DNA from: Calcarisporiella thermophila CBS 279.70
Lineage: Eukaryota > Fungi > Calcarisporiellomycota
Assembly: GCF_041956535.1 (NCBI RefSeq)
Contig: NW_027192196.1
Location: 1,100,752 to 1,164,751, forward strand
Reading direction: 5' to 3'
Length of the DNA: 64,000 nt
The notes beneath the pieces were generated by a model. That model was not told the DNA's origin and did not search any database. It saw only the letters and a list, made by a program, of their open reading frames with translations. A program made the translations under genes and the position numbers. Positions 13,268-62,407 of this stretch are shown in pieces; positions within the stretch are counted from its first letter, which is position 1; the number at the start of each line of letters is the position of its first letter.

Positions 13268-15614
13268 ATGGGCCATTTGATAACGGTTGCATCTTGTGTT
13301 CTTAATCAATGGGCCCTAGATTTCGAGGGCAATCTCCAGCGCATCATTGCAAGCATCCGTGAGGCCAAACGCCGTGGGGCACGTTTAAGGGTTGGCCCGG
13401 AATTGGAGGTGACGGGGTATGGATGCTATGATCATTTTTTAGAGGGCGACACGTACCTGCATTCGTGGGAGATGTTGGCCAATATTCTAAATGATGAAGA
13501 ATGTAATGACATTCTTTTGGATATCGGGATGTAAGTTATATATTGGTTAATGTCACCCTCTCAAAGATTGGTCATTGTATTAAACTTTGTTTGTGGATAT
13601 CTTTATTTTTGGGTTTTTGCAGGCCTATCATGCACAAAAATGTCAAGTATAATTGCCGCGTTCTTATCCTCAATCGCAAGATTCTTCTAATTCGGCCCAA
13701 GATGTTCCTGGCCAACGACGGAAACTACCGCGAACTACGCTGGTTCACTCCGTGGTGTAAACCTCGCACTGTTGAAGAATACTACCTGCCAAGAATGATT
13801 CGCGATATTACCGGTCAGGTGGGTGATACATGCTTGTGCTTTCGGTAGTAGATCTTTGGGCTCGATTTCTTAATATATTTGAATTTACTGCCAGGCAACA
13901 GTTCCTTTTGGTGACGCGATTATATCTGCGAAAGATACGGTTATTGGAGTAGAGCTTTGCGAAGAGCTGTTTACACCTAACAGCCCTCACATTGGAATGG
14001 GCCTTGATGGGGTAGAAATTTTTACCAATAGTAGCGGCAGTCATCACGAGTTGCGCAAACTCAATAGGCGCATTGATCTGATAAAAGACGCGACGCAGAA
14101 GGTGGGCTCATACTTAGGAGATAGTCATACTAGAAATCAACTTGAATACCCTCTATTGCATGTAGGTTGGTGGCGTGTACTTATATGCAAATCAGCAAGG
14201 ATGCGATGGGGACCGACTTTACTATGATGGGTGTGCCCTAGTTGCGGTCAATGGTCAAATAGTAGCGCAAGGATCGCAATTCTCTCTACAAGATGTCGAG
14301 GTGGCTACAGCCACGATTGACATAGAAGATGTACGATCTTATCGTGGTGCGATGACTAGTCGCTGCATTCAAGCTGCACAAACACCAGCATACCCTCGTA
14401 TCAGTATAGACTTCGCACTTTCAAGCGCTGCGCTTGACTCGCAAATCCACGTACGCCCTGATAAACCTCGGGCTGCATTTTACCACACCCCTGAAGAAGA
14501 AATTGCACTAGGTCCTGCGTGTTGGCTTTGGGACTATCTGAGAAGAAGTAAAACTGCGGGATTCTTCCTGCCACTCAGCGGTGGGATCGATTCATGTGCA
14601 ACAGCAACCATCGTGTGCTCTATGACAAGGCTGGTCGCTGAGGCTGCAAAGCAGGGAAATCAACAGATCATTCGCGATGCGCGTCGCATAGTAGGTGAAA
14701 AAGAAGACTCAGACTATCTCCCCACGGACCCAAGGGAGTTTGCGGGTCGAATATTCCACACTTGTTACATGGGCACCGAGAATTCGAGCCGCGAGACGAG
14801 GGACCGCGCTAAGCGACTGGCCGATGCTATCGGGAGCCATCATACAGATCTGAACATGGACACTGCAGTACGCGCAGTTCATACTGTCTTCTCACTGGCC
14901 ACTGGCAAAACGCCGCGCTTCCGCGTGCACGGGGGAACTAATGCGGAAAACTTGGCGATGCAAAACGTGCAGGCTCGGCTACGCATGGTCCTTGCCTACC
15001 TCTTTGCGCAGTTACTTCCGTGGGTGCGCGGACGAGCGGGGGGTCTGCTGGTGCTTGGAAGTGCCAATGTGGACGAAAGTTTAAGAGGTTATTTGACCAA
15101 ATACGACTGCTCCAGTGCCGACATCAACCCCATTGGTGCGATTAGCAAGGCGGATCTACGCCGATTTATCGCCTATGCGCATCAAAAATTTGATATCGCG
15201 GTGCTCGAGGAGTTCTTGAGTGCAACACCGACCGCTGAGCTCGAGCCTATCACTCAAAACTACGTTCAATCTGATGAGGCGGATATGGGAATGACTTACG
15301 ACGAGCTTTCCATCTTTGGCCGACTTCGCAAGGTGGAGCGCTGTGGCCCTTTCGCGATGTTCTCACGGCTCGTCCACGAATGGGGTGACCATCTTCGGCC
15401 TGCGCAAGTGGCCGAGAAAGTCAAACGATTCTTCTACTATTATGCCATCAATCGTCATAAATTGACGACATTAACCCCGAGCTACCATGCAGAGTCCTAC
15501 AGCCCCGACGATAATCGATTCGACCTGCGACCTTTCTTGTATAACGCCGCATTCAATTGGCAGTTCCGGAGGATCGATGCCGCAGCAGAGGCACTGGAAA
15601 AGGTGAACAAATGA
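13268..15614 (+). CDS. QNS1: Glutamine-dependent NAD+ synthetase (4 exons)
   Basis: [91 protein letters not shown]. Confidence 0.97.
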
Positions 15615-16381: not shown

Positions 16382-17956
16382 CTAGTTGGTATGCGTCTGT
16401 TTCGGCTTATCGGCAAAAGCCTTGCTAGGTTCAGCTTTTCTATCTCCAGTCTCAGCTGGTTTCCAAGTGTCCCTCGTCTGATCTGGCTTATCGGTGGATT
16501 TCGGCATTGCTTGGGAAACAGTTGGTTTTACAGTAGCATGTGGAGTTTCTACTGATTTTGAAGAGGTAGACTTTTCAGTATATTTGACCTCCTCAGTGGA
16601 GCTAGGAATCTGGGAGGACTTGGGACGAAGAAACGAGTTGATACCCTGAGCATCTATATCAGATACGTCCAATTCCATACGAACATTCTTTTGCTTATAT
16701 GGGATATTGAAAACATAATTGCCAATCTGGGCGGTAATTACCGAATCAATATCCACATCTATACCACTAGGATAGTTGTTTAAGATATCTATTAATGTCT
16801 CTTCGCTGGCGGTTATTATTGTAGCCAGCTTGTTGAAGGCTTTCTCCTGCCTTTGAGGGACGAGAAAGTTGGAGCTATGATCGATTTCTAGGAGAGGGTT
16901 GTTCTTAAACTGAAGTTTTGCCTTAACGTGTGAAACGATAATATCGGTGTCGAGAGGGTTGAAGAGCGAAAAAGTACTATTAGTTTTCCTATAGACAACG
17001 GCATCTAAGCTAAAAACACAACGGGAGCTCCTAATCATTTCATCTTTCACACCCACCACGGTGGCAGGTACTTTGAGAGAAGCAAACGACGGCTTAATGG
17101 ATTCAATAGGGGTCGACTCGCTAGTTCCGACTACGGCCACATTTGAGTTCTGACCCGCAAGGAACGCTTCGAGTACTTCGACTCCAGCTCCATCTCCATT
17201 GGGGTTAATAGCGAGTCGTCCAGAGACAGGATTGGCTCCACGTTTAATGCTAAGATCCTTGAGTGCAAGGCTGCCAATCTTCTTATCCTGATATTGTACA
17301 TCGAACGAAACATCACCAGCATGGATGGCAATATCTGAGGGGTTCTGGAGGGTGGAGGTCACATCAACTTGGATGCCATCCTTAGTGCCACCAACGACCT
17401 TAAACTGTTCGAACTTGAGAGGCACAGATGTCAGCCCATTCATTCCCTTGAGATTCACGTCGTTTCCGAATGGAACCCCCTTAAAGGCTTGTTCGCCAGT
17501 AGAAGTCTTAGTAACAACATCAGAGGTGCCGTGCAAGTTGATGGTAGCCTGCGCCTGTGTAGTGAGGGTCTTGAGCAGTTCTTGGATTTGAGCATGTTTG
17601 TCTGCTGCTTCTTGCAGTGGAAGATCGGCGAACTTGAAAGTAAGCTGACCATTGCCAGAGCTTGCTGGAGCACCCTCAGGGATGGAGAGGGTTGCAATGT
17701 CGTCATTTCCGTACTTGATGATAGCATTTGACAAATACTTCAGAATTGTAGCATCCCCATCGGTGGTGTATTTCACAGTAAGAGAGTCGGAAGTAGAGAG
17801 AGGAGAGTAAGGATCACCTTTTGTGAAGTCGAGGTCGATGGATTTGAGCTCAACGCCATTGATGGTGAATCCATCGGCAGGCTTCTCAACGGGAGCACCC
17901 CGGCAGGTTGCCACAAGAGCCAAGGCGATGGCAATAGAAGGGATCGAAAGCTTCAT
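16382..17956 (-). CDS. Secreted DUF3712/Tag1-like protein, paralog 1 (524 aa, intronless)
   Basis: Signal peptide MKLSIPSIAIALALVATCRG; beta-rich repeats with LKGMNGL, LQNPSDI and FNPL motifs collinear with the large protein at 26340-31233; S/T/P/K-rich tail. Confidence 0.8.
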   Translation of the reverse strand: MKLSIPSIAIALALVATCRGAPVEKPADGFTINGVELKSIDLDFTKGDPYSPLSTSDSLTVKYTTDGDATILKYLSNAIIKYGNDDIATLSIPEGAPASSGNGQLTFKFADLPLQEAADKHAQIQELLKTLTTQAQATINLHGTSDVVTKTSTGEQAFKGVPFGNDVNLKGMNGLTSVPLKFEQFKVVGGTKDGIQVDVTSTLQNPSDIAIHAGDVSFDVQYQDKKIGSLALKDLSIKRGANPVSGRLAINPNGDGAGVEVLEAFLAGQNSNVAVVGTSESTPIESIKPSFASLKVPATVVGVKDEMIRSSRCVFSLDAVVYRKTNSTFSLFNPLDTDIIVSHVKAKLQFKNNPLLEIDHSSNFLVPQRQEKAFNKLATIITASEETLIDILNNYPSGIDVDIDSVITAQIGNYVFNIPYKQKNVRMELDVSDIDAQGINSFLRPKSSQIPSSTEEVKYTEKSTSSKSVETPHATVKPTVSQAMPKSTDKPDQTRDTWKPAETGDRKAEPSKAFADKPKQTHTN

Positions 17957-18097
17957 TGTAGGGTGTCAATGATAGTGAGAAAGAGCAAAACTATATAAGG
18001 AATGGAGATAATAATAATGAGAAAGGAGAAAAGGAATCTAAAAATTAAATAAAGAGTAGAAAAAACAATAAGAGAGTCAATATATAATATAAAAGAA

Positions 18098-18710
18098 GAG
18101 CTCTGCGTATCTCCTTTTATATTATTTTCCCTTCACTTCCCTACCATCAGAGTTCATTCGTACTTCCGGGGCTACCCCAGAATTGTTGTGGAACTGCGTT
18201 GGTTGGTAGCCATGTGTAGAGGACATATTTCACCGCTGCTTCTAACTAAATATTAAAGTTATATCGTGTATCATGGAGTTGGAATAAGCCGAGCATCCTC
18301 GGATGTGAAAGTTGCACTGGAGCAGCAACTCAAAGCTACACGAACAAGCAATTCCACCGGATTAATAGTATAGTAAACGGTGACGAGAGCAGACAAATAA
18401 GATCTGAGACTACTCCTCATTTCATATTAGCATAGCGTTGCTGAATGCATGACAGTGTTACCCATCATCCCACTGATCTAGATTTCTAAGTCAAGGTCGA
18501 ACTCTTTAGATAACCTTGGCCAAGTTCATAGCTTCACTCCGGTTTGGTAGGCAAAGGTGGAGTGAATTAAACTTTCTCATTGAATATTCGCCCGTGTTAT
18601 CATAGTTTATCCTCGCACTATCATGTCTTCCGGGTTCTTGTGCAGTATTCAGAGTTGAAGTTCAATGTATGCTTAGAATAAAGATTAACCTACTTCGAAC
18701 CATATATGCA
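18098..18710. repeat. Upstream region of paralog 1, a diverged direct copy of 20621-21240
   Basis: Collinear similarity with identical blocks such as CAAGCAATTCCACCGGATTAATA (18345-18367 and 20889-20911), TTGGAATAAGC and CATCCTCGGAT. Confidence 0.8.
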
Positions 18711-19268
18711 ATCTATTTTATTGAAGATACACCCATATGATTGAATGCCATAATGCGTGATTGAGGGTTTAGAGTAATTTTATAAATTTAAAAAAATTTG
18801 CGACAAGTTCCATTTTTGTCAAAAAAAAAAAGCAAGTTACTTGAGGGACTTCACTTCCTAGGCACCCATATTATGAAGAGAAGAAATTTTTAGTGTCCCG
18901 AAGCCATGGCCCCAATGACTACATTATAAAATTGAATAGTACGAAAAAATGTTTGAGATATTCTACAATCCAGTACATTTTCTACTTAATTCCTTAAACT
19001 CAATGACGGTTATTCAGACTCAACAGTATTGCTTTTTCTCTATTATCGTTTTTATTTGGTTTAAATTTAACAGTGAAGAATTCATCAGATTAAGAGGTGG
19101 ATTGGTAGCTATTGGTCAAAATATTGTTCATATAAATAGAAGAAGGTATATTATAATAGTTAAAATGAATGGCAATACAAGAAGCTAAAGGTAGAGTGTA
19201 GTCAGACAGATAAAGGAGCGCTATAACAAGATAACTTTGGATCGGCTTTCAAGTATCCATCTCATCTA

Positions 19269-20109
19269 TTAAATGTTAAATGTCTGCTTTGGCTCTTCAA
19301 CGATTGATGTGGTAGGATTAGGCTTCTTGTTTTCAGTCTCGACAAACTTCACTGTACTCTTTGTCTGATTCTTGGTCTCAACAGGATTTTCAGTGGATTT
19401 TGAGTTCTCCTGGGAAACAGATGGCTTTTTAGTGGTGTGTGAAGTTTCCACTGACATTGAAGGGGTGGGACTATCAATTGATTTGGATATCTCAGTGGAG
19501 CTGGGAAATTGAGAAGAGTTGGAGGGAAGAAGCCCCTTCATTCCTTGGGCTTTTAGTTTTAAGTCAAACTCGATGGACACATTATTCTGCTTGTACGGGA
19601 TATTGACAACATAATCGCCAACTTTGATGGTAATAACTGAATCGATATCAAATCTATATGAATAATCGAAATTTTTAAGAAAATCTCCGAGGTTCTCATC
19701 GCTGGCAGTAATTGTGCTAGCAAGCTCGTTAATAATTTTCTCCTGTCCATGGGGAATGAGAATGTTGGTGTCTTGGTTGACCTCGAGGAAAGGGTTATTC
19801 TTAAATGCGATATTTATCTTCAAGTGTGTCACCGTAATATCGGTATCAAGAGGGTTAAAAAGCGAATAAGTAGTCTTGGTTTTCTTATATGCTATGGCAT
19901 TTATGCTCAAATCACATCGAGGGTTCCGGATCAACTTATCTTTAACACCCGTCACCGTGGCAATTGCCTGGAGTGAAGTAAACGATGGTTTAAGTGATTC
20001 AATGGGGGTCGATTCGCTAGTTCCGACTACGGCTACGCTTGAAGTCTGGCCTCCGAAGTACGCCTCGAGTATTTCGGCTCCAGCTGAGGCTCCATCTCCA
20101 CTTGGGCTG
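19269..20109 (-). CDS. Secreted DUF3712/Tag1-like protein, paralog 2 (3' half; 5' half lies in the gap)
   Basis: Open from the gap edge (SPSGDGASAGAEILEAYFGGQTSSVAVVGTSESTPIESLKPSF..GVKDKLIR) and aligns with the C-half of paralog 1. Confidence 0.8.
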
Positions 20110-20620
20110 NNNNNNNNNNNNNNNNNNNNNNNNNNNNNNNNNNNNNNNNNNNNNNNNNNNNNNNNNNNNNNNNNNNNNNNNNNNNNNNNNNNNNNNNNNN
20201 NNNNNNNNNNNNNNNNNNNNNNNNNNNNNNNNNNNNNNNNNNNNNNNNNNNNNNNNNNNNNNNNNNNNNNNNNNNNNNNNNNNNNNNNNNNNNNNNNNNN
20301 NNNNNNNNNNNNNNNNNNNNNNNNNNNNNNNNNNNNNNNNNNNNNNNNNNNNNNNNNNNNNNNNNNNNNNNNNNNNNNNNNNNNNNNNNNNNNNNNNNNN
20401 NNNNNNNNNNNNNNNNNNNNNNNNNNNNNNNNNNNNNNNNNNNNNNNNNNNNNNNNNNNNNNNNNNNNNNNNNNNNNNNNNNNNNNNNNNNNNNNNNNNN
20501 NNNNNNNNNNNNNNNNNNNNNNNNNNNNNNNNNNNNNNNNNNNNNNNNNNNNNNNNNNNNNNNNNNNNNNNNNNNNNNNNNNNNNNNNNNNNNNNNNNNN
20601 NNNNNNNNNNNNNNNNNNNN

Positions 20621-20785
20621 GAACTCTGTGCGTCTCCTTTTATAAATATTTATCCTCGCTTTTCTGGAATGATCAGAGTTTATTTGTATTTCGGTGGTCA
20701 CCCCAGATTATGGTGGAACGGCGCTTGTAGGCTGCACGATGTGAAGGACCTATTTCGTCGCTACCCCTCCATCTTGGAAACGGCT
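20621..20785. repeat. Left arm of a perfect inverted repeat (at least 165 bp, runs into the gap)
   Basis: Exact reverse complement of 21406-21570. Confidence 0.95.
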
Positions 20786-21405
20786 AAACTTCTATGATAA
20801 ATAGTGTTGTGTGCCACGGATTTTGGAATAAGCGGAACATCCTCGGATTTGATTGTCGTACTGAAATTTTAAATCTAAACTGCGTAAGCAAGCAATTCCA
20901 CCGGATTAATATGAAGAGTAAAGTAAATCAAAAACTCCAGCTATAGCTTTGCTCCTCCTTTCCCTTGCAGTCTAACATGATAGAATGCTTGACAGCGTTA
21001 CCTATCTTATTGAGCCATAATTTAAGTCTGGACTTAACTCTTCAAATAAATTGATCAAGGCCTTATTTCTCTACAGCTTGGTAAACTTAGATGAAAGAGT
21101 GTAGATTGATATGAACTTTTTCATTAAATTTTCCTCTTGTTACCTGTTACCACCTAAGTATCACATCTTTTGAATTCTTGTGCAATAATCAGAATTGAAG
21201 CTGAATATTTGCTTAGAACTATGATAACAACGCTACAATATATATATACGAACTATATTGAAGATATAACCATGTGAAAGAATAACGCAATCCATAAAAG
21301 CGGGTTTGAACAGATGTAGATGTTTGCCGCATAACTGTTTTTCACAATATATTGAAGATATATAGTATTTAAGATCAAAAATATAGAAGAAAGGAAGAGA
21401 GTGTG

Positions 21406-21570
21406 AGCCGTTTCCAAGATGGAGGGGTAGCGACGAAATAGGTCCTTCACATCGTGCAGCCTACAAGCGCCGTTCCACCATAATCTGGGGTGACCACCGA
21501 AATACAAATAAACTCTGATCATTCCAGAAAAGCGAGGATAAATATTTATAAAAGGAGACGCACAGAGTTC
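21406..21570. repeat. Right arm of the perfect inverted repeat (proximal promoter of paralog 3)
   Basis: Exact reverse complement of 20621-20785; contains TATAAAAG at 21547-21554. Confidence 0.95.
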
Positions 21571-21708
21571 TTTTTTTTTTTATTCGACTCTTTGATCGTT
21601 TTTCTTCTCTTTATTTTACTTTCGATTCTGTTTCTCCTTTCTCATTTTTATTATTCCCATTCCTTTTATAGCTCTGCTCCTGTCTCTGATTATCATTGAT
21701 AGCCTATA

Positions 21709-23984
21709 ATGAAATTCTCGCTCCCCTCTATTGCCATCGCATTGGTTCTTGTGGCGACCTGCCGGGGTGCTCCCGTTGAGAAACGCGCCGAAGGGTTTAC
21801 TATCAATGGTGTTGAGCTCAAGTCCATCGATCTCGACTTCACAAAAGGTGACCCTTACTCTCCTCTCTCCGCTTCCGACACCCTTACTGTGAAATACACC
21901 GCCGATGGGGATGCTGCCGTTCTGAAGTACTTGTCAAATGCTATCATCAAGTATGGAAATGACGACATTGCAACCCTCTCCATCCCTGAGGGTGCTCCAG
22001 CAAGCTCCGGCAATGGTCAGCTTACCTTCAAGTTTGCCGACCTTCCACTGCAAGGAGCAGCAGACAAACATGCTCAAATCCAAGAACTACTCAAGACCCT
22101 CACTACTCAAAATCAGGCTACCATCAACTTGCACGGCACCTCTGATGTTGTTGCTAAGACTTCTGCTGGCGAACAAGCCTTTAAGGGAGTTCCATTCGGA
22201 AACGATGTGACTCTCAAGGGAATGGGTGGGCTGGCGTCTGCGCCTCTCAAGTTCGAACAGTTTAAGGTCGTTGGTGGCACTAAGGATGGCATCCAAGTCG
22301 ATGTGACCTCCACCCTCCAGAACCCCTCAGATATTGCCATCCATGCTGGTGATGTTTCGTTTGATGTACAATATCAGGATAAGAAGATAGGCAGCCTTGC
22401 ACTCAAGGATCTTAACATTAAACGTGGAGCCAATCCCGTTTCTGGACGACTCATTATNNNNNNNNNNNNNNNNNNNNNNNNNNNNNNNNNNNNNNNNNNN
22501 NNNNNNNNNNNNNNNNNNNNNNNNNNNNNNNNNNNNNNNNNNNNNNNNNNNNNNNNNNNNNNNNNNNNNNNNNNNNNNNNNNNNNNNNNNNNNNNNNNNN
22601 NNNNNNNNNNNNNNNNNNNNNNNNNNNNNNNNNNNNNNNNNNNNNNNNNNNNNNNNNNNNNNNNNNNNNNNNNNNNNNNNNNNNNNNNNNNNNNNNNNNN
22701 NNNNNNNNNNNNNNNNNNNNNNNNNNNNNNNNNNNNNNNNNNNNNNNNNNNNNNNNNNNNNNNNNNNNNNNNNNNNNNNNNNNNNNNNNNNNNNNNNNNN
22801 NNNNNNNNNNNNNNNNNNNNNNNNNNNNNNNNNNNNNNNNNNNNNNNNNNNNNNNNNNNNNNNNNNNNNNNNNNNNNNNNNNNNNNNNNNNNNNNNNNNN
22901 NNNNNNNNNNNNNNNNNNNNNNNNNNNNNNNNNNNNNNNNNNNNNNNNNNNNNNNNNNNNNNNNNNNNNNNNNNNNNNNNNNNNNNNNNNNNNNNNNNNN
23001 NNNNNNNNNNNNNNNNNNNNNNNNNNNNNNNNNNNNNNNNNNNNNNNNNNNNNNNNNNNNNNNNNNNNNNNNNNNNNNNNNNNNNNNNNNNNNNNNNNNN
23101 NNNNNNNNNNNNNNNNNNNNNNNNNNNNNNNNNNNNNNNNNNNNAACCCCAGCGAGAATGGAGCCGGAGTCGAAGTACTCGAGGCATTCCTTGAGGGTCA
23201 AGACTCAAATGTGGCCATAATTGGAACTAGTGGGTCGACCCCCATTGATTCACTTAAGCCGTCGTTTGCTTCTCTCAAAGTACTTGCTAACGTGGCGGGC
23301 GTGAAAGATAAATTGATCCGAGGATCGAGATGGGGAGTGAATATAATTGATGTCATACTTCACAAAAAGTCCTCTTGGAATTTTGCAATTTTCAACCCTC
23401 TCGGCATTGATATCACTATCAATCACATAAAATCTACTATCTCGCACAAGGGTATAAAATTGGGTGAGATCGATCAAGATACTAACATGATTGTTCCTCA
23501 AAGCCAAGATAAAGTCACCGAAATGCTTGCTCTTAAATGTACTGCCACAGATGAGGAATATGTTGATATTTTTAGGGACCCTTCTGACCCATTCAATGTC
23601 GATATCGATTCGGATTTCACAATCAAGATTGGTGCTTATGTTGTCACCATTCCACACAGGCAAAAGAATGTGTTTACTGAACTATTTGTACCCGACCTCA
23701 AAGCACAAGGGATAAATTCACTTCTTCCTGTCAAGTCCTCCAAAATGCCAAGCTCGATTATTGCATCCATGTCAACCGAAATGCTCACTCCCTCAAAATC
23801 AGTGGAGATTCCGCATATCACCACAAAACCATCTATTTCCTATGAAAACCCAAAATCCACTGGATACCCTGCTGAGACAAAAAATCAGACAAAGAGTACC
23901 ACGAAACTAGCCGAGACTGAGGATGGGAAGCCTAACCCTACCAAATCAATCGTCGAAGTGCCAAAGGAAATACACGACATTTGA
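21709..23984 (+). CDS. Secreted DUF3712/Tag1-like protein, paralog 3 (interrupted by an N-gap that is probably ~1 bp in reality)
   Basis: Signal peptide followed by APVEKR; N-half nearly identical to paralog 1; gap flanks ..GRLI / NPSENGAGVEVL are directly contiguous in paralog 1 (GRLAINPNGDGAGVEVL). Confidence 0.82.
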
Positions 23985-26339: not shown

Positions 26340-29300
26340 ATGGATTCAGAGCGAGATCTAGCCGAAAATGTGCGGCATCACGTCGCTCAAGATGAGAATG
26401 ATGCAACCTATTTCGACGAGAAGACTTACTCCATACCCACCCCACGCTTCTACAAGACAAGGCGTTTCTGGATAATTTTCGGAGCGGTCACCGCAGTCCT
26501 TCTTGCAATTTTCCTCCCTCTCACATTTCTCGTCTTCATCCCCATGGCTAACCAAAACGTTGTCACCAGCTCCACTATTAATATCAAAGATGCAAATGTC
26601 ACTAGCGGTAAAGACGGATCTATCGGTATGAGCATGAATGCGCAGATTGATAATACCGGTAAATCGATATTATGATAAAACTCGAATGTCATAGCGATAT
26701 AAACGTCCAAACTTTCTAATTTTTCAATAGGTTCTTTTGATGGTGTTATGGAGTTTCCTGAACCCGTAAGAGTGAGCTTTGATGGAAAAGAGTTTGCTCG
26801 ATTTGCCAATGTTCCACCTGTCAATGTCAGTGGGGGAAGCGGTACTTTCTTGTCTAACTCGGCCCTAGAAGTCACCGATCAAGATGCCTTCAAGGAGTTT
26901 ACCAAGAAACTTATCGTTTCCGACAAAGTCAATTGGCATCTCTCCTCCACCGTCTCTCTCAAGGCAGAAGGAAAGGAACCTAAATCAATACCAATGGAGA
27001 AAGATGTTGATATCATTGGTGAGTGTCTATTAAAACTAGAAATGTAGTGAGATGTTAAACGTCATATCTAATTGAATTTATGAAATTTAGGCTATAATGG
27101 ATTGAACAACATCACAATTTCAAGTTTCCAGATGCCGGGTAATGATACACAGGGTGGAATTGGTATGCGATTGTCTGCTGACTTGTTCAGTGAATCGCCG
27201 GTCAGTCTCCTGCTAGGCAATGTGTTGATGAATGTGACCTATAACAACATCAATTTGGGTTCACGTAAGTTATAAAGATTATCACGCGCTATGCTTTTTT
27301 TGACGAGATCGCTCTTTTCATATAGTCCAAATGAACGATCTCTTTGTTCGACAAGGAATGAACGCCTTCAATATCTCTGGAAGCCTTGTACCGCAAGCGA
27401 ATCCAGCGGATCTTGAGCAGGTCGGTGCATTCATGAGCGATATTCTTGCGGGCCGACGTGTTGTGACCACTGCCATTGCAACATCTGCCCCATCCAATCT
27501 AACCAGCAATCAACCTGCCTGGATGACCGATACTATCAACGGTTTACGTATGAATCTTGGGCTCCAGTCACCCAAGCCCCTTGAGATAATCAGCAACATT
27601 ACACTTGATTATATGCGCATGGCCTTCCATCCTGATGAACCTTATGTTCCCACGACTTCTACCGATGCGATTAAGGCGATAGTCACAGTTCCTTTTGGCT
27701 TTACCATTGATATTTCCAAAGTCAGGCAGAATATTACGGTTTCAAAAGATAATATACCGCTGGCGACTATCAACTCTGACTGGGGAAATGCGCACAATGA
27801 TACCAACATTAAGCGTGTTGTTATTTCTCTTCCAGAGTCAGATTTCAAAGTTCTTTCCGGAAAGGAGCAAGACTTCACTGACTTCGTCACTGAGCTTACT
27901 CTAGAAGATGAAGCCGTAGTGAATCTGGCTGGAAATGCTACTGGTATTGCAAAAACTCCCATTGGCGAGGTGACACTGCGTGATCTGCCCTTCAACAGTA
28001 ATATAACGCTCTATGGTCTCCAAGGTCTTAAAAATCCTCCGCCAAAAGTGAATGGTCTCGATGTAGTTGCAGGAACAAAGAAGGGCCTAAAGCTGAAGAT
28101 TGACACCGATCTAGAAAATCCAAGTAATTTAGAGATTGCTATGGGGTCTGATGTAAGGATGGAAATGGTCTACGAGGGCAAAGATCTTTCCGAGGTTGTT
28201 CTCCCAGATTTAACCCTTCAAATCGGCAAGACCAAGGTTAAGGCAGAGTCGATATTTGATCCCAAGGCTTCAAGTGAGGGAATGAAATTGCTCGAATCAT
28301 TCCTTATGGGTGAGGACAACAAGATCTCTATCAAGGGCACAAAGCATGCCACAGATGTAGAGCCATTAAATCCTGGGCTTGAGCAGATTAAAGTCGGCAC
28401 CAAACTACCTGGCCTAGGTGAAAAGCTCCTCAAATCGGCAAAACTTATTATTCTTCCGGAAACCCCCAGGACAAAAGTCGCTAAGAGTATTGTGGAGGTT
28501 AACAATCCATTCTCTGCCACTCTCAATCTTTTCAAAATCAAAGCCCTTATTACCAACTTTGGAATTCCCGTCGGTACCATCAATGTTGAGAAGTCAGGTA
28601 GCGAGATTGAACTTCCTGGTAAAAAGGTCACAGAAACCACTCTCCCATTGACTATGAATATGGAAATATCGGCTATCATTGGTATCCTGCGCAAGAATGC
28701 GATTCGTGCTGGACTCGATGTCAGGCCACTCGATGAACTTTTGAAGCTGGGCGGTATCCCCATTAATGGTGGGGGTAACGATAGGCGTCTTGCCAAACGC
28801 GGCATCTTCGATGGATTCAACATTGTTGAATTCACGAAGAAAGCTCTCGGACACATCAAAGTATACGTAGATATGGAGATCGGAACGCGTATTGATGATT
28901 ATAGCATGTCCATCCACTATGAGCAGACCAATGTCGACGCTTACACTGATGACTCGATCGCTATTCTGATTCCTCTTATTGGACTTCCTATCATTCAAGC
29001 CATCATCAATCGCTCTGTACTTTCGATCGACTTTACGATTATTCAGGATCCAGCAAATAGTAAATTCAAGGCCAAGATGAAAGGAGCTGTAAGAGAAGCC
29101 GGTCCTGTCGATGCTCTCATCCATTTCAACGAGCCACTAAACATCATCTGGAACGGTAAGACTATTGGCGCAGTTACTATGCCAGACCTGAAAGTAGTTG
29201 GCGGACAAGGAGCCGACATCGATCTCGTGGCAGATGTGGCTGTCGTTGACGGCGCAGCGCTTGAGGAGTTCTCCAAGCAGCTTATTGCACAGCCTTCTTT

Positions 29301-31233
29301 CGATTGGGCACTTGAATCGAATAATCTGAGAGTGGACGCAGTGGGTGCCTCGTTTGCAGGCGTTAAAATGCAAAAGAAAGTAACGCTTAAAGGTATGGAT
29401 GGCCTCAAGGAAGGAGCGAAGATCGAAGAATTCAAGATCACGGGTGCGGATGCTGAAGGCCTCATCATTCAGTCCGTTGCTGCGCTACCAAGCCCAAGTG
29501 ATATCGGTCTTACTGCGAAAGTAATGCGATTCAAGCTTTTCTTCCTAAACACTGAGATCGGTTATCTTCTTGCAAATGATCAGGTTCTTCTTCCCGAGGC
29601 AACTAGTCGATTGTCAATGACCGGTCGCCTCAGACCTGGCATCCCAATCGATATCCTTAGCAAGCTCTTTGGAGCTTACCTCACTAATCGGCCAGTTCCA
29701 TTGCAAGTAGTAGGTGAAGAAGCAATTGGTCCTGAGGGGCGAGTTGATTGGCTCTCCAATGCACTTAAGACTCTCAAACTCACGGTCATTCTTAACGGCA
29801 TTGATAAGTTCCAAATGATTAAGGAAATCACGATTCAAGACTTTAAGATGGTATTGGAAAAAGGTAAAACACCACAAGGTTCATCACAACACACTCTTGT
29901 CAAGTATCAAGTACCTTTCCCTATCGAAGTCAACGTCAATCGCCTTTCTCAGAATGTCAATATCGTGTATAATGGAGTCAATGTCACTGGATTTGCTCTT
30001 AAAGATCAACCAGTCACTTCTACGCCTATTCCTGGCGGTGGAACCATTGATTTCAACTGGGCAGCAGAGCTTCCAGTACAGTCGCAGGAAGGATTTAAGG
30101 CGTTTTTAGCCGATGTTACAGCAAAAGATGAAGTACAGTTCCATCTATCTGGCTCTTCTGGAGTACTAGCGACAACCCCATCTGGCCAGCTTATGCTCTC
30201 TCCTATACCAATTGAGGTCGATACAAAGATGAAGGGTCTTGGTGGTCTTAAGAATCCGCCTCCACAACAATCCGGTGAAGTCAAACTCGGAGGAGGAAAA
30301 TTCACATTTAATGGATGTTCTGGAGCCAATGGAGCTAATCTCGGACTTCCTATAACTGTGTATAATCCAAGTTCCATCACCGTAGAGATGGGAGATGTTT
30401 ATTTCAAAACAGAGTGGGACTCTGTCCTTCTCAAAGGAAAATATATCGTTGGTCCAACCATGATTGAAAAGATGAAGCTTCAACCTGGCGCTAATGCTGT
30501 GACTACAAAGTTCTTTATGTGCGGAGTATGGGATTCAAGGATGAATAATATTTCAGTTCAAGCTTCGTTTTTAAGAGAATTTGCGTCTACAGGAGTGCAG
30601 CTTCGTGCCTTCGGTTATAATGATTATCCTGCACATCCATCCACCGATAACCCATTACTCGTTGATGCCATCACTAAGGTGGACTTACCTATCTTAGTCA
30701 AACATCGCGGGCTCAATCTATTGGCACTTAATTTGACCAGCTCTTCCGTCCTCCCAAGTTCCACTGCTAATATATCCTCGACGGTAGCGTCCTCATCAAG
30801 TGGTACTCCTATCCCATCTGTGACTGAGACATCAATTCCACCTACGAGCGACGTGCCAACTTCGCAGCCACAACCATCTAAGCCAACGACAAAGCAAGAG
30901 TCATCAACTACTGAGAAGCCGGAGAAGCCAACTGATGACAAAAAACCGCCAACTCCAACGGAGACTACTACTCCTCCCAAGAATACAACAGATCCCACTC
31001 CCAATAAACCCCCAGCTGACGATAAAGGCAATGGCAAAGAAGGTGGTAAAGAGGGTGGCAGGGACCAAGGCAAAGATGACAAAAACGCTGGAAAAGACAA
31101 AGAAAAAGCGCCAGGAGCTCAAGCTCTGGGTTTTGAGCAAAAAACCTCCTACGCAACGCAAAATTCTTGGTCACAAGCTCTGATGCTCTCTTTCTTCTGT
31201 TCTCTTGTTATGCCTTTCCTCTTGTTTGCTTAG
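26340..31233 (+). CDS. Large multi-repeat DUF3712/Tag1-like membrane protein (4 exons, about 1560 aa)
   Basis: N-terminal TM (FWIIFGAVTAVLLAIFLPLTFLVFI); GT-AG introns at about 26659-26730, 27019-27090 and 27265-27325; repeated LxGxxGL..NPS units; S/T/P stalk; hydrophobic C-terminus. Confidence 0.85.
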
Positions 31234-61731: not shown

Positions 61732-62407
61732 CCCTACAAAAAACCCGTCTGGTGAAAACTGCTAGAAAACGAATAGGAGCATGTAGAAAAGGTGGAGGAG
61801 GTTCGCGATTCCCTATAATTTTTCAACAATTTCACTATAATTTGTAGACTCCTCNNNNNNNNNNNNNNNNNNNNNNNNNNNNNNNNNNNNNNNNNNNNNN
61901 NNNNNNNNNNNNNNNNNNNNNNNNNNNNNNNNNNNNNNNNNNNNNNNNNNNNNNNNNNNNNNNNNNNNNNNNNNNNNNNNNNNNNNNNNNNNNNNNNNNN
62001 NNNNNNNNNNNNNNNNNNNNNNNNNNNNNNNNNNNNNNNNNNNNNNNNNNNNNNNNNNNNNNNNNNNNNNNNNNNNNNNNNNNNNNNNNNNNNNNNNNNN
62101 NNNNNNNNNNNNNNNNNNNNNNNNNNNNNNNNNNNNNNNNNNNNNNNNNNNNNNNNNNNNNNNNNNNNNNNNNNNNNNNNNNNNNNNNNNNNNNNNNNNN
62201 NNNNNNNNNNNNNNNNNNNNNNNNNNNNNNNNNNNNNNNNNNNNNNNNNNNNTTCACTATAATTTGTAGACTCCTCTCCCATTATTAATATCTTGAAAAA
62301 TAGGTGAAAAGTTTGTAAAAATTTAGGGAATCGCGAACCTCCTCCACCTTTTCTACATGCTCCTATACGTTTTCTAGTAGTTTTCACCAGGAGAGTTTTT
62401 TGTAGGG
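61732..62407. mobile_element. Non-autonomous TIR element (MITE/foldback), CACTA/CMC-like
   Basis: About 100-bp imperfect TIRs starting CCCTACAAAAAA and ending TTTTTTGTAGGG; 3-bp target duplication AGC at 61729-61731 and 62408-62410. Confidence 0.8.

Follow-up and report, generated by a model that had tools for sequence, protein, structure and literature searches.

Calcarisporiella thermophila is an early-diverging thermophilic fungus of the Mucoromycota. We analyzed 64,000 nucleotides (nt) from the genome of strain CBS 279.70 (deposit JAZGQU000000000), corresponding to G000:C6:1100752-1164751 on scaffold C6 of an assembly of 28.2 Mb in 116 scaffolds. The whole of this stretch is called the window, and positions refer to it unless a scaffold is named. 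It contains a cluster of three paralogous genes, P1, P2, and P3; P1 and P2 lie in tandem, and P3 lies head-to-head with P2. An inverted repeat is present between P2 and P3, and each of these two genes is divided by a run of N. The sequencing data are described as 454, Illumina (SOAPdenovo), or PacBio, and the method used for CBS 279.70 is not specified (PMC11393059). The N runs are of estimated length, which points to a scaffolded short-read assembly.

The paralog cluster and its inverted repeat

P1 encodes a signal peptide, an N-terminal half (N-half) with DUF3712 and LEA_2-like sequence, and a tail rich in S, T, P, and K. The DUF3712 profile (PF12505) scored 50.1 bits in P1 and 50.0 bits in the N-half of P3 (cut-off 24.1), and LEA_2 scored 25.2 in the N-half of P1, just under its cut-off of 25.4. 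No Pfam match was obtained for the C-terminal halves (C-halves). The products of P1 to P3 are predicted to be secreted DUF3712/LEA_2-like proteins.

The segments 20621-20785 and 21406-21570 form an inverted repeat of 165 nt with 100% complementarity and 620 nt between the arms; a chance origin is impossible for a match of this length. The left arm is assembled only as this stub, while the right arm continues through the 5' untranslated region (UTR) into the coding sequence (CDS) of P3. A homopolymer, T11, lies directly past the end of the assembled repeat, and it is likely that contig extension or gap closing halted at this run for technical reasons.

Read in the sense of P2, the spacer together with the upstream part of the arm aligned with the upstream region of P1 over 826 columns (67% identity, E 3e-55), and the alignment was unbroken through the boundary between the stub and the spacer. 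In the sense of P3, alignment with the P1 upstream region was limited to 286 nt within the arm. As the collinearity with P1 holds in the P2 sense only, the spacer appears to be the ancestral distal upstream region of P2. We found neither inverted homology past the upstream edge of the arm (21405/21406) nor an internal inverted repeat in the spacer, and an Rfam scan of the stub, the spacer, and the arm upstream sequence gave no match at E <=1.

A block about 350 nt before the ATG is shared by P1 (18279-18367), P2 (20807-20911), and the unlinked C10 paralog (L003:2578-2617), with the core CCGAGGATG(N)TTC(N)GCTTATTCC. The version in P1 reads CCG-N8-CGG, an arrangement that we take to be reminiscent of a zinc-cluster factor site. 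The block is a candidate family-specific cis-element. The features of the locus are summarized in Table 1.

Table 1. Features of the P1-P3 cluster in window coordinates (ORF, open reading frame; aa, amino acids)
Feature	Position	Strand	Description
Paralog 1 (P1)	16382-17956	-	Intact single ORF, 524 aa; reference for the expected gap content
P1 upstream region	17957-18770	-	Collinear with the P2 upstream region (left arm stub and spacer); direct repeats D2-D5
Paralog 2 (P2) C-half	19269-20109	-	279 codons and stop, open frame; the 5' part of P2 would lie inside the left gap
Left gap	20110-20620		511 N; predicted content of about 887 nt, a second, inverted copy of 21571-22457 (P2 5'UTR and N-half)
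Left arm stub	20621-20785	-	Sole assembled part of the P2 arm copy; ends where the T11/A11 homopolymer would start
Spacer	20786-21405		Unique, 620 bp, 33% GC; no notable ORF
Conserved upstream block(s)	20807-20911	-	Distance to the ATG about -350 for P2 (inferred ATG) and about -800 to -900 for P3; common to P1 and partly to the unlinked C10 paralog (D2, alignment)
Right arm	21406-22457	+	1052 nt, of which 303 nt are upstream and 5'UTR sequence and 749 nt are the start of the P3 CDS; proposed collapsed repeat unit
TATA-like box TATAAAAG	21547-21554	+	162 nt before the ATG, within the arm; same motif in P1 (-165) and in the C10 paralog (-138)
T11 homopolymer	21571-21581	+	Directly past the end of the 165-nt assembled repeat
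Paralog 3 (P3)	N-half 21709-22457, C-half 23145-23984	+	Divided by the right gap; C-half of 279 codons and stop, open frame
Right gap	22458-23144		687 N; about 1 nt would be hidden, by homology to P1

Predicted content of the two gaps

The arm contig ends with ...CTCATTAT, 2 nt into codon 250. The C-half of P2 (minus strand from 20109) starts with CAGCCCA, and when it is joined directly to the arm, the reading frame continues with 0 nt missing (ATC AGC CCA = I S P). The C-half of P3 at 23145 starts with AACCCC and needs exactly 1 more nt (or 1+3n) to be in frame with the arm; it is frameshifted by direct joining and also by the 687-N run as written. In coordinates of the P1 CDS, the arm ends at nt 749, and the C-halves of P2 and P3 start at nt 750 and nt 751, respectively; thus, the right gap should hide about 1 nt. 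The left gap must, by comparison with the other copies, hold a 5'UTR and an N-half, which would amount to about 887 nt if they are equal to 21571-22457.

Several observations suggest that one assembled arm represents two. Apart from the 165-nt self-match, the contig 20621-22457 (1,837 nt) occurs as a single 100% copy in the whole assembly; after it come P1 (87%) and unlinked paralogs (77-79%). The close subfamily has five N-halves against six C-halves, and the cluster alone has two against three. Both unique C-half contigs start at one homologous codon, as is to be expected if a common graph node ends there in a branch, and P2 and P3 are 65% identical in the first 60 columns past this break. 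The N runs total 1,198 nt against the 888 nt predicted to be missing, and the unique halves are 3,035 nt apart as assembled against 2,724 nt as predicted. These four independent lines make a collapsed arm well supported, if indirectly, and it is very likely that the full-length arm is identical or nearly so between P2 and P3.

A preliminary description of this region had claimed that the 165-nt segments are exact inverted copies and that both gaps break at the same homologous codon; the former holds over all 165 nt (100%), and the latter holds within 2 nt. Its proposal that the assembler had collapsed a longer repeat gains indirect support from the single arm copy, the counts of N- and C-halves, and the common codon at which both C-half contigs begin.

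The gaps can be solved on paper, with about 887 nt on the left (the inverted copy of 21571-22457) and about 1 nt on the right. Gaps filled in this way would yield two complete gene models of about 529 aa instead of fragments. Scans of metagenome collections for the predicted arm-to-C-half junctions of P2 and P3 and for the spacer-to-arm junction gave no match, although those collections possibly do not include this genome.

Probable gene conversion and the history of the cluster

We estimated synonymous divergence (dS) and the ratio of non-synonymous to synonymous divergence (dN/dS) by the Nei-Gojobori method. Between the C-halves of P1, P2, and P3, pairwise dS was 0.98-1.22 and dN/dS was 0.28-0.31. 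As both C-half frames of P2 and P3 are open, the genes are best regarded as old, functional duplicates. In the N-half, P1 and the arm are 92% identical, with dS 0.22 and dN/dS 0.20, and dS between P2 and P3 would apparently be 0. Either P1 or the arm compared with the N-half of the unlinked C10 paralog gave dS 1.6-1.8 and dN/dS 0.04-0.05. The N-half dS within the cluster is thus far below both the C-half dS and the dS to the C10 paralog, which suggests homogenization of the N-halves by gene conversion. Judged by these estimates, the low N-half divergence within the cluster would represent concerted evolution and not constraint alone.

The C-halves also retain traces of exchange. For about 180 nt past codon 250 (23145-23325 vs 17030-17206), P1 and P3 are 82-88% identical, and P2 there shows 65-75%. 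Over the final 120 coding nt, identity is 73-78% between P2 and P3 and 48-57% between either of them and P1. The likeness of P1 and P3 after codon 250 and that of P2 and P3 in the tail suggest that the three paralogs carry a mosaic of tracts from earlier conversions.

We propose that P1, P2, and P3 are old duplicates whose C-halves have diverged freely and whose 5' halves have been kept alike by ectopic gene conversion. The latest homogenization would have brought P2 and P3 to identity or near-identity over about 1,052 nt (codons 1-250 and the 303 nt in front of them), producing a long inverted repeat that flanks the 620-bp distal upstream region of P2. A short-read assembler would then have merged the two arms into one contig, and the scaffolder would have set N runs of arbitrary size on both sides; the real left gap would be about 887 nt (the second arm) and the real right gap about 1 nt. 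P2 and P3 would each keep their own, identical core promoter within the arm, and homologous recombination between the arms could now and then flip the spacer as a by-product of conversion. Taken as a whole, this combination of old paralogs, conversion-homogenized 5' halves, and collapsed arms is likely to be the best explanation.

Some points weigh against it. The single gap estimates, 511 and 687, are unlike the predicted 887 and 1, and only their sum roughly fits; such deviations are to be expected where a collapsed arm has mate-pair links to both of its flanks. The second copy of 21571-22457 in the left gap, and its identity, were deduced from the assembled sequence, and conversion was deduced from within-genome dS only. 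A protein word search returned only two paralogs, both from the same genome, and gave no orthologues for a by-species test of conversion. The sharp junction at 21405/21406 could be either the edge of the original inverted duplication, of which the inner part was kept homogenized, or the point at which a later, non-homologous copying event stopped. An older, larger palindrome that has since decayed was also considered; it is not supported, as the spacer contains no residual inverted homology.

The arms might instead be alike but non-identical, with the N-half of P2 a few per cent different from that of P3 and a real assembly gap; 21571-22457 would then be a blend or the P3 copy alone. The left copy was indeed assembled over only 165 nt, and P1, with its 92%-identical N-half, presents such a difference as a normal state in the cluster. 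However, a copy that differed by several per cent should normally form its own contig, and none was found anywhere in the assembly; both genes also break at one and the same codon, which fits a common collapsed node. We consider non-identical arms unlikely. It is more doubtful still that the stub is a fold-back or a gap-closing chimera, that only one N-half exists, that one C-half is a 5'-truncated relic, and that the sequence hidden in the gaps is unrelated. In favor of this reading, the stub is a short one at a contig end adjoining a gap, such ends do occur in short-read assemblies, and the single gap sizes do not fit the collapsed model. Against this, homology with the P1 upstream region is unbroken across the boundary 20785/20786, which indicates that the left copy is the ancestral context and not a chimera, and the right junction falls within a contig. 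Furthermore, the start of both C-half contigs at one codon is explained by a graph branch and not by independent truncation, and both C-halves keep 279-codon open frames with dN/dS of about 0.3.

The explanation that we consider least probable is an invertible regulatory switch, in which crossovers between the arms would flip the 620-bp spacer at a useful frequency, distal elements would pass between P2 and P3, and individual clones would express one C-terminal variant. In its favor, long and probably identical inverted arms flank an asymmetric spacer, and the block conserved upstream of P1, P2, and the C10 paralog lies about 350 nt from the P2 ATG but about 860-900 nt from the P3 ATG. Fungal flip/flop inversion through homologous recombination between inverted repeats does exist, as in Ogataea mating-type (MAT) switching (PMC4238957). 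However, both arms carry the TATA-like box and a proximal promoter of 303 nt, there is no linked recombinase, and no other head-to-head pair of such structure occurs in this gene family among the matches listed. Moreover, the closest analogue formed from homogenized paralogs was stable over about 54,000 mitoses (PMC9731477).

Spacer orientation, known systems, and the gene family

With TATAAAAG at -162 and 303 nt of upstream sequence inside each arm, both genes would keep a complete proximal promoter in either orientation of the spacer. Fungal upstream activating elements generally act in either orientation; thus, the shared spacer may serve both P2 and P3. Inversion of the spacer would leave both junction sequences unchanged; its phasing thus requires molecules that reach across >1.05 kb of arm, and short reads are not sufficient. 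We infer that the orientation printed in the assembly rests on unseen mate-pair links.

A profile search with Phage_integrase (PF00589) gave no hit on scaffold C6 and three weak hits on other scaffolds only, and a search of the genome with Flp_C gave no hit, in a search made without a positive control. The weak PF00589 matches, at G000:C14:777815-778300, C47:47026-47514, and C36:26614-26832, scored 25-27.5 bits, and one of them lies in a 1066-aa frame with an internal TGA. These may be Crypton/DIRS-type elements.

The preliminary description had placed the ancestral upstream blocks of the asymmetric spacer nearer to P2, as the alignment with the P1 upstream region also does. Its geometry was likewise correct, since the conserved block, now at about -350 of P2, would after a flip lie at about -350 of P3. 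It saw no recombinase in the window, and scaffold C6 gave no PF00589 hit. The suggestion that arm-to-arm conversion keeps the N-halves alike is supported indirectly by dS, which would range from about 0 to 0.22 for the N-halves and is 1.0-1.2 for the C-halves. Of the interpretation built on these observations, the collapsed repeat and the conversion stand, but the invertible promoter switch is unsupported, as the promoter lies inside the arms and no recombinase is linked. We thus regard spacer inversion as a possible rare by-product and not as a mechanism.

The closest known system is, by analogy, the flip/flop region of Saccharomyces cerevisiae chromosome XIV, in which the inverted paralogs YNL018C and YNL034W form a 4 kb inverted repeat around a 24 kb segment with 15 genes (Salzberg et al. 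2022, PMC9731477). Inversion there has recurred over evolutionary time, yet none of about 53,800 mitoses and 950 meioses yielded a flip (PMC9731477). In both cases the inverted repeat consists of paralogous genes; in yeast, near-identity is maintained by recurrent conversion, and inversion is a by-product of homologous recombination without a dedicated recombinase. Of the long near-identical inverted repeats that characterize flip/flop, the C. thermophila locus presents 165 nt as identical in the assembly and about 1052 nt as predicted. The two systems differ in scale, as the C. thermophila arms would be about 1 kb and the segment between them is a 620-bp intergenic spacer. They differ further in that only the 5' half of each gene is homogenized in C. 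thermophila, and in that the comparison covers both orientations across strains in yeast but one assembly in C. thermophila.

In the mating-type flip-flop of Ogataea (Hansenula) polymorpha and Komagataella phaffii, regulated inversion by homologous recombination sets which of two loci is expressed; this system involves centromeric or telomeric position silencing, is induced by starvation, and acts on segments of 19-138 kb (PMC4238957; PMC6692504). In contrast, nothing at the C. thermophila locus points to silencing, induction, or two states. The bacterial invertible promoters (fimS/FimBE, Salmonella hin, and Bacteroides invertons) have the same formal layout of inverted repeats around an intergenic regulatory segment. 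However, their repeats are sites of about 10-30 bp for a site-specific recombinase whose gene is close by, and the segment that inverts contains the promoter. The C. thermophila locus, in a eukaryote, has arms of at least 165 nt and probably 1052 nt instead of short sites, no recombinase nearby, and the core promoter in the arms; outside the arms, only the distal conserved blocks would lie in the spacer.

Large palindromes, such as the ampliconic palindromes of the human Y chromosome, also consist of inverted gene copies around a unique spacer with >99.9% identity maintained by intrachromosomal conversion, and they are routinely collapsed or gapped in short-read assemblies. The difference is in size, kilobases against hundreds of kilobases, and in the homogenized tract, which in C. 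thermophila ends mid-gene. The locus looks like a further example of an already known type of structure, with ordinary gene conversion between old neighboring paralogs.

As for the encoded proteins, yeast Tag1 is an example of a DUF3712/LEA_2 protein. The C. thermophila paralogs resemble Tag1 and other members of PF12505 and LEA_2 in the family match of the N-half, which lies over the cut-off for PF12505 and just below it for LEA_2. They are, however, small signal-peptide proteins that are predicted to be secreted, and not large membrane-anchored ones. P3 and the C10 paralog also contain a KR site, where P1 has KP. An AlphaFold2 model of P1 from a 4-sequence alignment had a mean predicted local distance difference test (pLDDT) score of 42 and a predicted template modeling (pTM) score of 0.28, too poor for a fold search.

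The C11 (C11:45188-46691) and C3 (G000:C3:1219517-1221079) paralogs encode the C. thermophila proteins VTP21DRAFT_1131 and VTP21DRAFT_7390 of NCBI, respectively (100% over long stretches). Both have introns or stops between the matched pieces, while P1 and the C10 paralog are single ORFs; thus, the presence of introns appears to vary in this young subfamily. When P1 was searched against other assemblies, no encoding record was obtained. In an adjoining large gene (1309-aa open frame; G000:C6:1128340-1131255, window about 27589-30504), at least three stretches are 27-35% identical to the paralog N-half. Elsewhere in the window, a long ORF on the plus strand (14175-15614) resembles the C-terminal part of glutamine-dependent NAD+ synthetase, as judged by eye from the translation, and a third assembly gap is located at 61855-62252 (398 N).

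It is highly improbable that the spacer flips at an appreciable frequency, swapping the -350 element between secreted-protein genes with a common N-half and different C-terminal domains. If true, this would be a eukaryotic, recombinase-free analogue of phase variation by promoter inversion, and the locus would be notable in this respect only if both spacer orientations come with differing expression of P2 and P3. In terms of gene conversion, the cluster would offer a clean, small case of partial-gene concerted evolution in an early-diverging fungus, in which the N-half and the proximal promoter are homogenized and the C-half diverges.

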